The notes beneath the pieces were generated by a model, which ran no database searches, was not told where the DNA came from, and was given only the letters and a program-made list of their open reading frames with translations. Made by a program: the position numbers and the translations under genes. Shown in pieces: positions 49,729 to 62,608 of a DNA stretch of 64,000 bases. The DNA is taken from positions 310,001 to 374,000 of IMG/VR virus record IMGVR_UViG_3300029893_000001; one strand, 5' to 3'. Each line of letters opens with the position of its first letter. Positions within the stretch are counted from its first letter, which is position 1.

Positions 49729-49905
49729 GCCCCAAAATCCATTTTGGATTTTGGGGCGTGAAAAACCCCCGGAGGGTTTTTCACTGGTTTTTGCAAAGCA
49801 AAAACCAACGCATTTTGCCGGGTAGGCAAAATGCGAGGCCCATTTTGCTCCGGGCAAAATGGGCGGGAGGCCGTTCGCTGGATTTTCCCCGGAGGAAAAT
49901 CCAGC
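49729..49905. repeat. array of six near-contiguous perfect inverted repeats
   Basis: Stems of 10-12 bp with 3-5 nt loops at 49729-49757, 49758-49784, 49785-49807, 49809-49835, 49838-49864 and 49877-49905. Confidence 0.92.
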
Positions 49906-49946
49906 CCTTAACGGCCGACTGGCCCGGGGCTTTTGCCCCGGGCCGG

Positions 49947-50204
49947 TCAGTGGCAGGACACCCAGAATCCGGGCCGGACCATGACGGCCCGATTGACCCG
50001 GCGGGTGACGTGCGCCCCGTACCGATTGCACGCGGCCTGCGTTTCGGCGAGGAGCGCATCCCCGCTCGACGCTTCCGAGCGGGGCGTCGAGGAATACTCG
50101 ACGCGGGCCGGCGTCGTCGCGCCGCAGCCCGAGGCGAGCAGCACGATGCAGACGAGCAGGAGCGAGAAGAGGCCAGCGCCGAGAGCCTTGATTTCGTCCA
50201 TCAT
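49947..50204 (-). CDS. small putative lipoprotein
   Basis: Hydrophobic signal ending LLASGC; promoter motif at 50228 and GGAGG. Confidence 0.65.
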   Translation of the reverse strand: MMDEIKALGAGLFSLLLVCIVLLASGCGATTPARVEYSSTPRSEASSGDALLAETQAACNRYGAHVTRRVNRAVMVRPGFWVSCH

Positions 50205-50309
50205 TATTCGGTCCTCCCTTGTGCCGACTAGTATCGGGTGGGTTCGCTCCTCTTAAATGGAGAAGCCCCCGGGCATCCGCCCGGGGGCTATTCCCTTGTT
50301 GCCCGGAAA

Positions 50310-50786: not shown

Positions 50787-50850
50787 GATTCCTTTCCGGC
50801 GAGGCGTCCCTCGCCTCATTTCCTAGTATCGAATGGGTTCGTTTGGCCGA

Positions 50851-50943: not shown

Positions 50944-51050
50944 GGGGCAAAAACCTCCGTTCGCCGTCTAATATCGGCCGGGTTCGCCCAATTGACATTT
51001 CGAGAGTAGCTTAAACGGGCTTTGGCCCGGGTTTCCCCGGGCCGCCCGCC

Positions 51051-51467: not shown

Positions 51468-51538
51468 GATTCACCATTCTTTCTGGGGCGCCGTGCCCCG
51501 TCGTTGTACCGACTAGTATTGTCAGGGTTCGGAAAACT

Positions 51539-51672: not shown

Positions 51673-51743
51673 TTCACTACTATCAGCCGGGTTCAAATCC
51701 CTCTTAAACGCGAGAAGGCCCGGGGCTTTTGCCCCGGGCCCCA

Positions 51744-51941: not shown

Positions 51942-52247
51942 TATTCACCTCCCACCAACTACTATCGAGCGGGTTCAATTGCTATTCGGGAGTAGGGTCA
52001 CGCGGAAATAGGAAAATGCCGACCAATTAATTTTGACCCATAAGTGGTAAAGTATGTAACCGCTCGTTCACACATTCTCACGCTTAAGTACGTATACGCT
52101 CGCAGCCATTGCGAGCTTGCTTGTACCCACTGCGAAATAGCCTAATAAGGCATGTACGCTCGCAGCCATTGCGAGCGGGGCGGGGCGTTAAAAGGCTACG
52201 GGCCCCAGAGGGGCCCTATCTCCTCGCAGCCGTTGCGAGAAATGGTC

Positions 52248-52729: not shown

Positions 52730-52756
52730 GAACCGTTCTCGCAGCCGTTGCGAGAA

Positions 52757-53095: not shown

Positions 53096-53220
53096 GATTA
53101 TTCCTCCTGGGCCGGAGCCCGTTGCCCCGACTAGTATCGGCCGGGTTCGGCCGACTAGGGAATTAAACGCGCAACGGCTGCGAGATTTCTCGCAGCCGTT
53201 GCTTGTGTAGAGTCAGTGGG

Positions 53221-53730: not shown

Positions 53731-53850
53731 TCGGCTTTCCTCCTCAGCGACTATTATCGTCGGGGTTCACGTCCGACACGAAAAGCGCGTTAAATGAAAC
53801 AACGGCTGCGAGAAATCTCGCAGCCGTTGCGTGCCTTGGGAACTTTGGAA

Positions 53851-54195: not shown

Positions 54196-54290
54196 GGGTC
54201 GTCTCCTCGCTGACTATTATCAACAGGGTTCTCGCAGCCGTTGCGAGAAATTAAAGTAAGATGGCCCCGGGTTTCCCCGAGGCCCTCTTT

Positions 54291-54677: not shown

Positions 54678-54759
54678 TCAACCTCCCTTCGCCGATTATT
54701 ATCAGCAGGGTTCTGTGCGGCCGTGAATGTCCTTAAAGCACGAAAAGGCCCTTGCTAGG

Positions 54760-54915
54760 GCCCTTTCGCGGGTCATTTCGGCAAAAGCTGACCAGGCTCG
54801 GAATACCAAGGCACGTGGTCGTGTACCTTGGTTAGCCTTGCCCCTTTTCGAGTCCATTATTGGTGGCTCGCCTTACGGGTGGGAGGGTGCAGCCCGGATG
54901 GAAACGGAACGAGAA
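54760..54915 (-). ncRNA. candidate ncRNA cassette (~160 nt)
   Basis: Between the promoter motif at 54922 and hairpin-TTTAA at 54733; no SD-led ORF; 10-bp stem ACCAAGGTAC/GTGCCTTGGT and others. Confidence 0.45.
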
Positions 54916-54958
54916 CACCATTTAGTATCGCCAGGGTTCTCGCAGCGGCTGCGAATCC

Positions 54959-55466: not shown

Positions 55467-55491
55467 GCCGAATATTATCGGCAGGGTTGAA

Positions 55492-55564
55492 TCGGACCGG
55501 TGGGATTCGAACCCACAACGTCCCGGTTATGAGCCGGGGGCTCTAACCATTGAGCTACGGTCCG
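55492..55564 (-). tRNA. tRNA with CAT anticodon (Ile2 or elongator Met; not initiator)
   Basis: CGGACCG TAGCTCAATGGTTAGAGC C CCCGG CTCATAA CCGGG ACGTT GTGGG TTCGAAT CCCAC CGGTCCG A; paired 1-72; no encoded CCA. Confidence 0.93.
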
Positions 55565-55921
55565 ATGGTTTTCACTAGGTTACGTTTCGCGTTACTTTGT
55601 GCGAACGATTCAGGCCCAGATCCCAGGCGCCGAATCCGGTTGCTCCGGGATCGGGATGTATTGGTTTCCCACGAATCCCGCCGCCGCGTCCAAGGCGACC
55701 ACACGGGGGAATGTCACCGCAGGGTGCGGCTCATCCTCCCAATAGGCTTCCCACGCAGCCAGAGCGAGATACTGCAAGAGCAGTTTTTCCATTATTCACC
55801 TCCTCGCCGTATCCATACGGGCTTGCACCACTTTTCTCAATGACACGAGGCCTTGGGTCGCTGTCTTCCCACAAACGTATGGGTGCAACCCATACGTTTT
55901 CGCCTTTGGTGTACACGAGAA

Positions 55922-56491: not shown

Positions 56492-56854
56492 CTAGAACTC
56501 GCCCTCGTCGTCGTCCACCGCGTCGAGTGCGTCTGGACGTCCGAGGCCGCCGTCGGGCCCATGAGGGTGGTACCTCTTTTCCTTGTGGATGTCCAGAAAG
56601 AAGAGCGCCTCTTGCAGCGAACGCACCCTCTTTGGATTCTTCGTCCGCACCATTTTTGGGTTCGTCAGGGAATCCTTCGAGACCCACTCCTCGACGAGAA
56701 AGAAAACCTCCGGGCACCCATCGAGAGGAGCCGAGGGCCCGGTAATATTCTCGATGACGGTCGAGATTCGGCCTCGCTCGTCCGAGAAAATCACCGTGGT
56801 CGGCTCGAAATCGGTGAGCTTTTCGATGATTTCACTGTAGGTGAACTTTCGCAT
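56492..56854 (-). CDS. hypothetical protein
   Basis: AAGGGA SD, followed by hairpin-TTTAA at 56449. Confidence 0.65.
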   Translation of the reverse strand: MRKFTYSEIIEKLTDFEPTTVIFSDERGRISTVIENITGPSAPLDGCPEVFFLVEEWVSKDSLTNPKMVRTKNPKRVRSLQEALFFLDIHKEKRYHPHGPDGGLGRPDALDAVDDDEGEF

Positions 56855-57030
56855 TTGTTCCCTTCTACCGACGGTATCGGTACTCCTCGTCCACCTCTTG
56901 CTGCGTGGGCTCCCTTCCGAGCCTCTTGCGCAGATCGTCGCGGGCCGCGTTCCACTTGCGCTCGTCCTCCGCCCTTTCGAGAGCGCAGGCCGAGCATCCC
57001 ATCATCATGCACATGGTCGCCTCCCTCTGA

Positions 57031-57245
57031 GAGCGAGGCTCGGAGCCGGAATCCGAGATTAGTCTGTTTTCGCCTCTTGGCCTAGCTCCGCCTCCGTGCC
57101 TAAACCTACACGGCCAGCCTCTACACTAGGTTGCAGACGAATCCAGGGTCTAGCCGCTTTTGCCTTGGATGACTAGTCCTCGGCGCTTGCACCCACGGGG
57201 GCGTCACCCCTTGGGGTATCTGGATTCCGGCTCCGAGCCTCGCTC
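57031..57245 (-). ncRNA. candidate structured ncRNA (~215 nt) with 24-bp closing stem
   Basis: Perfect inverted repeat 57031-57054 / 57222-57245 just downstream of the promoter motif at 57260; internal hairpins; no ORF. Confidence 0.7.
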
Positions 57246-57351
57246 CTCGCCGTCGTGGTCTACTATCAGGAGGGTTCAACTCCTCTAATTAAACAGAGAA
57301 AGGGGCCTGTGGCCCTTCTCCCTGTTTTGGAATCTCGCAGTGGCGGCGAGT

Positions 57352-57990
57352 CTAGTAGGCCCGGCTCACCACCGGAAGCCCACGCAGTTCCTCGACTATT
57401 CCCTTGAAGGCGACCTCGACCTCGCCGGTGTCGGGCAGCTCGACCGTGCGATCGATTCCGTAGAGATCCTCCAGGAACTCCCGGAATCCAGGCGTGTCGC
57501 CGCGGAACGGCTTGTTGAGAAGCCACTCCGCGAACTCTTCTCGGCGATTCCAATCCAGATCCTTGGCGACCTGCGTACCGATTGCCACCCCGAGGATACA
57601 ATATCCTCGGACATCCCAACGATCGATGAACGACCTCGCGCTGCTGTCGCTCGAAAAGACTCGACACGAGTAGTGCACGTGCCAGTAGCCCCACTTCGCC
57701 GCCGGCTCGCTCTCCCTCACGTCGTCCATGGAGGCGTAGGAACCCATTTCCGGGCCCCACCCATCCGACGACGGCATCGCCCTGACGAACGTATGGGCAC
57801 TGTCGTAGCGATTTCGGATGAAGCTGCCGTCCGGCATCTTGAAGGCGTTGATCTGGTGGCAGTGCGGGTGCTTGAGATCCTCCTCCAGCGACTGCTTTGC
57901 GCTCTCGACGCTGCGCTCGCAAAAGAACCTCCACGAGAGCACCGCGCTGATGAGCCGCTGCCAGACCTTGTGAGAAATCTTGTTGTTCAT
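57352..57990 (-). CDS. hypothetical cassette protein
   Basis: GAGGAGG SD; partial promoter motif at 58013. Confidence 0.7.
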   Translation of the reverse strand: MNNKISHKVWQRLISAVLSWRFFCERSVESAKQSLEEDLKHPHCHQINAFKMPDGSFIRNRYDSAHTFVRAMPSSDGWGPEMGSYASMDDVRESEPAAKWGYWHVHYSCRVFSSDSSARSFIDRWDVRGYCILGVAIGTQVAKDLDWNRREEFAEWLLNKPFRGDTPGFREFLEDLYGIDRTVELPDTGEVEVAFKGIVEELRGLPVVSRAY

Positions 57991-58279
57991 TGTTCTGCCC
58001 TCCTCGCTCTAACTATTATCGTCGTCGACTACGATCCGATGCTCCCCATTCGCGGCGCATGCTGAATCACGTAGGAGACGCCGGTCAAAACCCAGCCAGC
58101 GGGAGTGTGGCCGTAGATGTTCACGCAGAACGTGAACACCAACACGGCGACGATGACGTACCACCTCTTGAGGGTTTCCACGATTGATTGACCTCCTCTC
58201 GCCGAACTATTATCGACGGGGTTCGCCGTCATATCGAGAACGACGAAATGCCCTCCGGGACTTACCGGAGGGCATTTCG

Positions 58280-59859: not shown

Positions 59860-59932
59860 TGACCCCAACGGGATTTGAACCCGTGTTCTCGCCGTGAAAG
59901 GGCGGCGTCCTAGGCCACTAGACGATGGGGCC
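59860..59932 (-). tRNA. tRNA-Glu(TTC)
   Basis: GGCCCCA TCGTCTAGTGGCCTAGGAC G CCGCC CTTTCAC GGCGA GAAC ACGGG TTCAAAT CCCGT TGGGGTC A; promoter motif at 59946; no encoded CCA. Confidence 0.95.
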
Positions 59933-60210
59933 GTGTCCTCGCCGATTACTATCGGCGGGGTTCACTTCTTTCCGTGGGTGGACTCCCACCATTTCAGATA
60001 CTCGTAATCCTTTCGGTCGAGCATCCGATAATAGGACTCGGGGTCCGCGTCGAGTTGGTATTCATTCTCAGCGGCGTTTTGGTCGACGCCAGGAAATGTC
60101 TCCTCGTACCTGACTCGTCGATTTTTCTTACGCTGTTTCTGCTGTCGTCGCCGTCGCATGGGATATTATTCCTCGGGTTAACGCCGAATAGGCCCCGAAA
60201 GGCCATCGGC

Positions 60211-60408
60211 AGAAGCGAATCGCAGTGGGGAGGCCTACAGAGGCGGATAAAGGCAAACCAATACCCGGAACCCTCGGTTCCGACGGGATTCGAACCCGCA
60301 TCACCGCCGCACCTGGTGCCACAGGACGCCCACTAGACAGCTCCGCGTTGGCACTCACGGAACGTTCATCGTAGGTCCCTGTAAGCCGCCCCACTGCGAT
60401 TCGCTTCT
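60211..60408 (-). ncRNA. candidate ncRNA (198 nt) with permuted tRNA-like (YrlA-type) module and kissing loops
   Basis: 20-bp perfect inverted repeat 60211-60230 / 60389-60408 extended by 11 bp; T arm GCGGG-TTCGAAT-CCCGT, loop-closed acceptor CGGAACC-GAG-GGTTCCG, D-like arm; followed by hairpin-TTAA at 60178. Confidence 0.72.
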
Positions 60409-60419
60409 TGGTTATTGTT

Positions 60420-61170
60420 TCCGCAGATTCAGTTTCCTCCGCCCTGCGCTGCGGCTCAATCTGAGTGACCATGAGAAGGGAGTGCAGTATTCGTTAGCCT
60501 CGTTGGAGATAGTGTGCCCTTTGACTGCCGAGGGTGCAATAGCAATCTGCACCTAAACATAGGCCCGGCAATCTACAGACGATAGTCCAGCGAAGCACCG
60601 AACAATGCGTGTAACCTACGCGATGGTCAAACAATCGAGATGAGTACGAAAGGGAGTTAATTGGCGAGTCAAGGCGTCCTCCTAACGAGACTCTTTTGGG
60701 CCAGCTTTCGCTTTTAAGTGGCGTGGAGGTACGACACAATCTGCAACGTCCAGTAGCAGAAGCCCTGCCCTTGTACTCAGAACATTATCCAGCATATGCT
60801 GGAAGCGAATGGCTATGTTCCTTCGCCACCCGTTCCCCTTGAGCCGCCTTTAGCGGACGCTCATTGGTCCTATCGGAAGCCTAGGCACATCTTGCCCAAG
60901 ATTCCAATAGTATCAATTCAATCTCCGAGCGGTCCAGCCAGGGGGACCGATCCCTGCCACGAACTTAGCGGCGGCGCGTCATTCGTGGCTATATAGTCTC
61001 GAAGTGGTTACGACTCTTGCCCGACAAGTGTCGCAGCAATCAACTGGTCCAGGGGAAGGATTCAGTTGAGTAGGTATGCTTAGTTGCTTCTTGGCGGGTT
61101 TCCTACTAAACCCAGCCAGTCATAAGCTGTAGAACAGGAGAATCATTTCCAGTCCTCCGGCTGTGGGATT
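60420..61170 (-). ncRNA. candidate large structured ncRNA (~750 nt)
   Basis: No credible ORF in an otherwise gene-dense region; dense hairpins and long-range stems; strand inferred from neighbours. Confidence 0.5.
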
Positions 61171-61205
61171 CATTAAACGCGAAGAGGGGCCCGAAGGCCC
61201 CTCTT

Positions 61206-61760
61206 CTATGCGTCCACCATCGCCCGACGGCTCCAGTAGAGGATTGCCTTGGCGAAATCCTCCGCCGAATAGGTGGCCGGCGTTCCTCCGGGGAGACCCA
61301 GGAAGTTGCGGGCCATCGCCATCGGAGTCTGGGGCTCCGGCTCCTCGGTGGGGCGGGCGTTGATCGAGACGATCTCCCACTCGCATTCCGTCGAGGCGTC
61401 GTTGCCGAGAACGTCGTGCCTGTAGAGCACGATCTCGACGACCTTCGCGGGAGCCTTCTCGCCCTTCGCACGCACCTCGATGTAGGGCTCCTCGCCCTCT
61501 CGCCGCGCCGAGAACGTCGCCCGGAGCGTCGTCTTCGGAGTGACCTCGATGACGCCACACTTGAAGTAGTGCGCCTGACTCTCGGTCATCGGGATGAGCA
61601 GAACGCCGTCGCGGTAGCCCGGCTTCGCCTCGGAGAACTGCTGCTCGACGAAAGCGATGAGCACATCCCACTTCGCATCGTGGGTGGCGATGAAGTGTGA
61701 GAAGGGGCTCTCCGGCGTCTGGCGACGCACGAAGTCATTGATTCCGATGAGGTTACCCAT
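61206..61760 (-). CDS. DUF3228-like protein
   Basis: INDFVRRQ, PGYRDGV, FSARREGEEP, IVLY, WEIVSIN, PMAMARNFLGLPGG; promoter motif at 61792. Confidence 0.72.
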   Translation of the reverse strand: MGNLIGINDFVRRQTPESPFSHFIATHDAKWDVLIAFVEQQFSEAKPGYRDGVLLIPMTESQAHYFKCGVIEVTPKTTLRATFSARREGEEPYIEVRAKGEKAPAKVVEIVLYRHDVLGNDASTECEWEIVSINARPTEEPEPQTPMAMARNFLGLPGGTPATYSAEDFAKAILYWSRRAMVDA

Positions 61761-61807
61761 GATTGATTCGGCCTCCCTTTGCCTCGCCAAACTACTATCG
61801 ATTGGGT

Positions 61808-62020
61808 TCAGTCCCTCTCGATCGCGGAGAAGTCTCCCAGGTTCCACGTGGTGTGAGTGGGCTGCATGATGCCGAGAACCTGAGTTCCGTAGTTCTTCTC
61901 GTAATCCCAGGTGTTGAAGTCGCCCCGCGACTGAGCGTAGGCAGCGATGACAGCCTCTCGTGGAGAGCACGAAAACGTCTGCTCGTGGCAGGTGGCGAGG
62001 TTGAGGACAGTGGTGAACAT
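61808..62020 (-). CDS. hypothetical protein
   Basis: Start MFTTVL after GAGGAGG following hairpin-TTTAA at 62040. Confidence 0.65.
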   Translation of the reverse strand: MFTTVLNLATCHEQTFSCSPREAVIAAYAQSRGDFNTWDYEKNYGTQVLGIMQPTHTTWNLGDFSAIERD

Positions 62021-62490: not shown

Positions 62491-62608
62491 GATTGATTGC
62501 CTCCTCTGATTGATTGCCTCCTCGCTCAACTATTATCGGCGGGGTTCAGCGTTCTCTTAAACGCGAGAAGGGGCCCGAAGGCCCCTCGTACGCAGCTCAC
62601 TTAGTGAG

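Follow-up and report, generated by a model that had tools for sequence, protein, structure and literature searches.

An uncultivated 392-kb subsurface phage was found to carry, exactly between a phage promoter motif and the opening gene of a small minus-strand operon, a 215-nt segment (57031-57245; hereafter element A) closed by a perfect inverted repeat. The arm GAGCGAGGCTCGGAGCCGGAATCC (57031-57054) and its exact complement (57222-57245) were complementary at 24 of 24 positions with 167 nt between them, confirming the perfect 24-bp stem around about 167 nt that a sequence-only reading of this DNA had described. The perfect helix, its presence on the transcribed strand, its position from promoter to ribosome-binding site and the routine occurrence of tRNAs at the heads of operons in this phage together fitted best with a cis-acting double-stranded RNA element. 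Our preferred explanation, which is tentative and to which we give somewhat less than an even chance, is that element A is a part of the mRNA leader that acts in cis through a co-transcribed long-range helix (28 bp), which would be cut by host RNase III or would stabilise the mRNA.

The window, by which we mean the whole stretch of 64,000 nt that was analysed, comprised bases 310001-374000 of a 392,328-bp virus record from IMG/VR, for which CheckV estimated a completeness of 100%; coordinates are those of the window unless they are marked as genome positions. The window sequence was contained in subsurface and rock metagenomes, and none of the RNA runs listed contained the stretch of element A.

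The inverted repeat and the operon leader

Within the window, the 24-mer arm occurred at two sites only, with 0 matches expected in 100 shuffles; element A was single-copy in the 392-kb genome, and blastn-short recovered no paralogs of it there. In the minus-strand RNA, the 5' arm of the helix (GAGCGAGGCUCGGAGCCGGAAUCC; 57222..57245) started with GAGCGAGG, eight bases that form a word common in the leaders of this phage, and contained the palindrome GGCUC-G-GAGCC, while the 3' arm (GGAUUCCGGCUCCGAGCCUCGCUC; 57031..57054) was its exact complement. Beyond a single bulged C (57055), AGAU (57218-57221) paired with AUCU (57056-57059), which brought the helix to 28 bp.

Folding of the whole of element A yielded -120.1 kcal/mol on the minus strand (z -6.25 vs shuffles) and -113.8 kcal/mol on the plus strand (z -4.77 vs shuffles). 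The 167-nt interior (57055..57221) formed local hairpins, and its fold was no better than that of shuffles: z was -0.50 on both strands, and 59 and 60 of 200 dinucleotide shuffles folded at least as well. Fold energies of the interior were -58.0 kcal/mol (minus) vs -55.2 kcal/mol (plus), with wobble pairs in the inner helices slightly favouring the minus strand. The non-random fold of element A therefore stems essentially wholly from the closing helix. The hairpins that had been listed from the letters alone (GGGG/CCCC, CTAGTC/GGCTAG, TCTGCA/TGTAGA and CCGTG/CACGG) were present, as was the complementarity between an AACCTA loop and TAGGTT that had been proposed to pair, but neither went beyond chance; these hairpins and the six-base loop-loop complementarity are the chance yield of a GC-rich sequence. 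Rfam searches, run over the whole window at gathering thresholds and over the element A locus at E<=10, returned noise only, and element A thus matched no known family even at the permissive cut-off.

Genes near element A were tightly packed and, by codon and GC3 scoring, all lay on the minus strand. The order on that strand ran from a gene of 212 aa (57352-57990) through element A to an ORF of 49 aa (56865-57014) and another of 120 aa (56492-56854). The 212-aa gene was an orphan that matched itself alone among 5.8 billion proteins, and it was closed by a terminator-like hairpin (AACAGGGAGAAGGGCC-ACA-GGCCCCUUUCUCUGUU, then UAAUUA; minus strand, 57292..57326), which indicated that the promoter of element A begins a new transcript. 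The 49-aa ORF (MCMMMGCSAC...) had a high GC3 (0.84) and no family match, and the 120-aa ORF was an orphan whose sole full-length match was itself. No Pfam or PHROG family was assigned to the proteins neighbouring element A, and a search of 5.8 billion proteins returned no full-length relatives of them except themselves. A tRNA-Met (55491-55565) and a tRNA-Glu (59860-59932) were encoded on the same strand as element A. A partial third copy of the arm, GAGGCUCGGA (minus; 56916-56934 vs 57026-57044), was located inside the 49-aa ORF and could pair with the 3' arm (10 + 4 bp), at borderline significance.

The promoter motif that had been noted at 57260, upstream of element A, proved genuine. The sequence GAACCC-TCCT-GATAGTAG (minus strand, 57260..57277) was a perfect match to the consensus of a genome-wide motif, GAACCC-N4-GATA-N-TA[GA], and ended 14 nt before the 5' arm. 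Within this copy, GAACCCTCCTGATAGTAG, a -10-like hexamer GATAGT occupied 57262-57267, and from its position we infer a transcription start at about 57255, in the 14-nt stretch ACCACGACGGCGAG (57246..57259) that joins the motif to the 5' arm. The motif was first detected as a direct-repeat family and was then scanned for genome-wide; at <=2 mismatches it occurred 84 times, with 78 copies on the minus strand, where 71 remained at <=1 mismatch. Their density was highest in the higher-GC zone at 360-392 kb and 0-80 kb of the genome. Minus-strand examples in the window, besides that of element A (57260-57277), were located at 50228-50245, 50823-50840, 50968-50985, 51513-51530, 51677-51694, 51959-51976, 53131-53148, 53751-53768, 54214-54231, 58207-58224, 59946-59963, 61792-61809 and 62530-62547. 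Downstream of most copies, at 8-64 nt, came a Shine-Dalgarno sequence with its start codon, and the motif was often followed by (U)CGGCGAGGAGG and the start codon; other copies directly preceded RNA genes, including a tRNA-Glu (at 13 nt), a tRNA-Gln, a tRNA with a CUA anticodon and a YrlA gene. Given these placements before start codons and RNA genes, the motif is very probably the promoter of this phage. Its spacing differed from that of sigma-70 promoters, which suggests that it may be read by a phage-specific polymerase or sigma factor.

Two further kinds of feature were observed beside copies of this motif. At 54735-54939 (minus), a motif copy (54922-54939) was followed by about 185 nt without an ORF and by a terminator-like hairpin (GGGCCCUAGCAAGGGCC) with a U-rich tail, and the next copy came at 54696-54713; this segment (fold z -2.8) is a candidate small RNA. 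A palindrome, CGCAACGGCTGCGAGA-TTTC-TCGCAGCCGTTG, recurred with variants at 52223-52240, 52737-52752, 53170-53201, 53800-53831 and 54230-54245, roughly every 500 nt in the gaps that separate consecutive small genes, and usually just upstream of a promoter motif. These palindromes are probably shared terminators.

Downstream of element A, the sequence led directly into the operon. The Shine-Dalgarno sequence of the 49-aa ORF, read from the sequence as GAGGGAGG (minus strand, 57020..57027), lay 4 nt past the 3' arm, and the ATG start codon (57012-57014) followed the end of that arm by 16 nt, with the Shine-Dalgarno sequence between them. No terminator was found after element A and before the 49-aa ORF. 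As there was no terminator and both the Shine-Dalgarno sequence and the ATG fell within 16 nt, element A was assigned to a 245-nt leader of the small operon. The proposed 215-nt RNA would lack a defined 3' end, and a stand-alone ncRNA was not supported, given the missing terminator, the place of element A in the leader of the 49-aa ORF and an interior without detectable structure.

The leader with element A was 245 nt long, compared with the 8-64 nt usual in this phage, and without the 215 nt it would be a normal leader of 30 nt. Eleven long leaders were folded, and that of element A alone was strongly non-random (z -6.75). At another operon head, the tRNA-Glu began 13 nt after its promoter motif and an ORF followed 26 nt further downstream; this arrangement, with an ORF behind a tRNA, indicated that the phage routinely cuts RNA elements off the fronts of its mRNAs.

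A proposed leader helix and RNase III

By our reading of element A as a cis-acting leader helix, transcription would proceed from the promoter at 57260-57277 along the minus strand, the 5' arm would be transcribed about 10 nt after the start, and its exact complement would follow about 190 nt later. The arms would then zip into a perfect long-range helix, 24 bp in length or 28 bp if the pairs beyond the bulged C are counted, at roughly -57 kcal/mol, which would loop out 160 nt of unstructured RNA and stop 4 nt before the Shine-Dalgarno sequence of the 49-aa ORF. Cleavage by host RNase III would detach the promoter-proximal end together with the looped-out segment and leave an mRNA whose 5' end is positioned just before the ribosome-binding site, and a helix left uncut would act as a 5' stabiliser. 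Cut or uncut, the helix would set the stability or translation of the small operon, comprising the 49-aa and 120-aa ORFs and the genes that follow.

Involvement of RNase III is plausible. The helix, whether counted as 24 or 28 bp, was long enough to be a substrate of this enzyme and lay on the transcribed minus strand behind the promoter motif. A helix of more than two turns is a classic RNase III substrate, and RNase III cuts the early transcripts of phage T7 at stems. No RNase III was encoded in the phage record, and therefore the host enzyme must be assumed. The stems at the T7 sites R0.3-R1.3 and in the lambda N leader are similar to element A in that they place double-stranded RNA in a leader or intergenic region of an early-type phage transcript, directly upstream of a ribosome-binding site. 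However, the T7 and lambda stems form locally, as hairpins of about 50-60 nt in which internal loops are usual, whereas element A would form a long-range perfect helix around a 167-nt loop, and its cleavage is putative. Intervening sequences of bacterial 23S rRNA offer a second likeness. These inserts are 100-200 nt in length, and their ends pair into a long stem; RNase III removes them, and the flanking RNA is not re-ligated. Those sequences lie within rRNA helices, whereas element A lies in an mRNA leader.

Two properties of the repeat count against the leader-helix reading. A helix that is Watson-Crick at 24 of 24 positions, without a single G-U pair, is the expected outcome of duplication at the DNA level more than of long selection as RNA, and a loop of 167 nt is unneeded for a processing site.

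Insertion, inversion and retron readings

The perfect arms, the ordinary interior, the normal 30-nt leader that remains without the segment and the leader-like word GAGCGAGG suggest that element A is young, having originated as a recent foldback insertion or as an inverted duplication of leader sequence. Taken further, element A could be selfish or neutral DNA, either a MITE- or Correia-like foldback or an inverted duplication formed by template switching, that is merely tolerated in the leader; we regard this as rather unlikely, but as deserving real weight. Besides the perfect arms, an interior with random-like fold energy on both strands agrees with such an origin, as does the total size of 215 bp with 24-bp arms, typical of MITEs (100-400 bp, with terminal repeats). 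Removal of the 215 bp restores a leader of usual length, the surroundings consist of orphan genes in a hypervariable, higher-GC region, and the opening of the 5' arm with a common leader word would agree with inverted copying of nearby sequence.

The distribution of the sequence argued in the other direction. Further copies with target-site duplications, which the sequence-only reading had named as the mark of a MITE, did not appear: element A was single-copy in the genome, and its plus-strand flanks, ...CTCTGA and CTCGCC..., held no direct repeat. Exact scans of viral, metagenome and genome collections did not find the 24-mer arm, and contigs from four runs in three studies carried the identical sequence. 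Moreover, a neutral insertion overlaps with the leader-helix reading, as an inserted segment would be transcribed along with the rest of the leader and its arms would pair all the same.

A looser search, which required the outer 13 nt of both arms, returned nothing from metagenomes and a single match elsewhere, at the contig end of a Solirubrobacteraceae MAG. That locus had unrelated 81-nt arms, single-copy in the MAG, and an unrelated interior, and the 20-mer it shared with element A was as frequent as its reversed control in 151 genomes of that order. The match was thus rejected as a second copy of element A and attributed to coincidence.

The repeat-enclosed Correia elements of Neisseria have 26-bp inverted repeats, are co-transcribed and are bound or cut by RNase III (PMC2649163). 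Like element A, Correia and other MITEs are 100-250 bp long, with terminal repeats of about 25 bp, and are positioned between promoter and gene (PMC2649163, PMC2229807). The Correia RNA hairpin, which is co-transcribed and bound or cut by RNase III, alters expression (PMC2649163, PMC2229807). In contrast to element A, which was single-copy, without target duplication and found nowhere else, Correia elements are multi-copy, share a conserved core and duplicate a TA target.

The perfect identity of the arms would also fit a constraint on the DNA itself, such as a pair of operator-like binding sites or an inverton that switches the operon, which we consider very unlikely. Each arm contained the palindrome GGCTC-G-GAGCC, which occurred nowhere else in the genome, and the arms bracketed the stretch from promoter to ribosome-binding site. 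Known invertible promoters are of the same size as element A. The palindrome as a repeated operator was ruled out by its restriction to element A. Against inversion, no serine or tyrosine recombinase (PF00239, PF00589) was found in the phage record. The promoter lies outside the repeat, so that inversion would leave it unmoved, and the arms of element A and of two other stem-capped elements of this phage (B and E125, described below) were unrelated, which indicated that no recombination site is shared among the three. Contigs of four runs from three studies showed one orientation and no joints, although this is weak evidence against inversion because contigs hide minor forms. Extrusion of a cruciform is unlikely with a spacer of 167 bp.

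A retron had also been raised as a possibility, with the long helix as an a1/a2-like arm. The likeness is limited to the general shape, in which inverted repeats enclose a structured ncRNA of some 200 nt downstream of a promoter; the 24-bp repeat has the form of a1/a2 repeats, a feature that is not specific to retrons. A retron needs a reverse transcriptase, and the earlier observation that none is encoded in the window was borne out on a larger scale, as a search for RVT_1 (PF00078) found none in the whole 392-kb record and detected it in control genomes. The two ORFs downstream (49 and 120 aa) code for orphans. A phage-encoded retron was thereby refuted, and the chance that element A is a retron msr/msd RNA is close to nil.

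Ro60/Rsr, YrlA-like RNAs and other stem-capped elements

The phage encodes a Ro60/Rsr protein of 558 aa (genome 95509-97185, minus), which gave a full-length match to Rsr of D. radiodurans (PDB 2nvo; E 3e-21) and contained the Pfam domains vWA_Ro60 and TROVE. The genome held 44 tRNAs and a tmRNA, and 37 of these tRNAs were located in the zone at 89-147 kb that encloses rsr. Around rsr, at least five YrlA-like RNAs were found on the minus strand (genome 97217-97349, 109479-109612, 117312-117457, 120341-120475 and 126725-126876). Their Rfam scores, 61.7 bits at best, narrowly missed the threshold of 69, and the five paralogs shared GNCGAAUGC, GACUACAU and CCUGUC and displayed 19 covarying pairs. 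RtcB, which would have been a link to RNA repair, was not found in the phage.

A scan for long inverted repeats yielded a second and a third stem-capped element. Element B (60211-60408, minus; arms 60211-60230 and 60389-60408), 3 kb from element A, had 20 perfect base pairs followed by 11 pairs, some of them G-U, giving a stem of 31 bp in all that closed 158 nt. Its canonical T-arm, GCGGGUUCGAAUCCCGU, was identical over 20 nt to a YrlA paralog and to tRNA-His, and was directly followed by a closed 6-bp acceptor-like stem, GGAACC-GAG-GGUUCC, in the arrangement known from YrlA; a D-like arm was also present. Its interior was strongly structured, in a strand-specific manner (z -3.83 on the minus strand vs -1.52 on the plus strand). 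From these features, element B looks like a divergent tRNA mimic of the YrlA type without the usual Ro-binding bulge. No promoter motif was found for it. The stretch of about 800 nt upstream of element B (60409-61205) had no convincing ORF and a GC content below that of its flanks; counting element B, about 1 kb that follows the terminator of the gene with its end at 61206 is apparently non-coding. The third element, E125 (genome 125478-125628, minus), was an 18-bp perfect inverted repeat (stem of about 23 bp) closing 115 nt between tRNA-Asp and tRNA-Asn. Its build was the same as that of element A, its interior did not fold beyond shuffles, and it had no Rfam match.

The presence of this system bears on another explanation, according to which element A would be released from the leader as a trans-acting ncRNA, either an atypical Y-like RNA working with Rsr or a double-stranded RNA decoy, in one class with elements B and E125. 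We consider this improbable. It is favoured by the encoded Rsr, by the at least five YrlA paralogs with their covarying pairs, and by element B, which combines the same architecture with a T-arm, a closed acceptor-like stem and a structured interior. Element A is also as near to its promoter as the tRNA genes are to theirs, and in both element A and element B the stem contains, towards its 5' end, the sequence AGCGA, which is close to the Ro-binding motif GNCGAA (PMC4201824).

Membership of element A in the Y RNA family was, however, not borne out by any of the searches. A covariance model built from the five YrlA paralogs of the phage (R1) did not match element A, its sole overlap being noise (4.1 bits, E 5.3), and it matched element B only locally (15.1 bits). 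Neither Rfam YrlA (RF02553) nor YrlB gave a hit to element A at E<=10, and no tRNA or T-arm was matched in 56850-57400 at E<=10. The signature words GACUACAU and CCUGUC were lacking. The Y RNA stem-bulge-stem GNCGAA(N)G (as defined in PMC4201824) was absent, with no CGAA internal loop; the 5' strand GAGCGAGG lies in the perfect helix, and the sole bulge is the C at 57055. Elements A and B shared a 29-nt local match at the same offset (p 0.046 vs random genome segments), which was not taken as significant, nor was their global alignment, and homology between them was rejected. A degenerate pattern derived from this match found nothing in viral contigs. Taken together, these results place element A outside the Y RNA family, and it was rejected as a Y RNA. 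The trans-acting explanation is further weakened by the unstructured interior of element A and by its distance of about 270 kb from rsr. For Y RNAs, Ro60/Rsr is usually encoded nearby, and here the canonical YrlA genes are situated among the tRNAs that surround rsr. A looser functional link of element A to the Ro60 system may exist.

In YrlA and Y RNAs, as in element A, the 5' and 3' ends are paired into a stem (PMC4201824, PMC12135203; RF02553). They differ in having a CGAA stem-bulge-stem and a tRNA-like domain, both absent in element A, whose stem is three times longer and perfect. A broader proposal would join elements A, B and E125 as stem-capped RNAs of a class, so far undescribed, that belongs to huge phages. 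In such RNAs, a perfect helix of 20-30 bp would enclose 115-170 nt of cargo (tRNA-like in element B); they would be cut from polycistronic transcripts and act in trans as non-canonical partners or competitors of Ro60/Rsr-YrlA or as double-stranded RNA decoys against host nucleases. We hold this to be decidedly improbable; if it were true that the three form one Ro60-linked class, the repertoire of Y-like RNAs would be wider and a testable system for the role of viral Ro60 would be available.

Element A is unique so far. No relative carrying its locus was found by protein searches, which included 5.8 billion proteins, in GenBank phage DNA or in two relatives (G001 and G002), and the locus had no DNA match in GenBank phages. 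The Rsr of G001 was 44% identical, and this relative was too distant for synteny at element A. In a distant relative, rsr was located inside a tRNA array flanked by Y-like RNAs. The promoter motif picked out an IMG/VR relative, IMGVR_UViG_3300031772_000043. G002, found via the motif, was 65-72% identical over genome 288-342 kb; the match stopped short of the element A locus, and the head of G002 was not syntenic.

Taken alone, element A is a modest finding that would add one more case of a phage leader with a foldback insertion or a long segment of double-stranded RNA, and its use lies mainly in providing a handle on the processing of early transcripts in an uncultivated 392-kb subsurface phage. 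Its surroundings add value through the promoter motif (about 70 copies), the Ro60/Rsr protein with at least five covarying YrlA paralogs, and the tRNA-like element B within its 31-bp stem.

Two observations concern other parts of the genome. ARAGORN predicted a tRNA with a CUA anticodon (an amber suppressor, labelled Pyl) at genome 105653-105726, directly behind a promoter motif, a hint that TAG may have a sense meaning during part of the phage cycle. The fold that departed most from shuffles across the genome (z about -7.8) was that of 49730-49950 (minus), where seven perfect hairpins (10-11 bp), all with an A/U tract, stood in tandem in an intergenic gap exactly at a jump in GC content from about 52% to 60-66%. 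This array may serve as a multiple terminator or as an insulator between genome modules.
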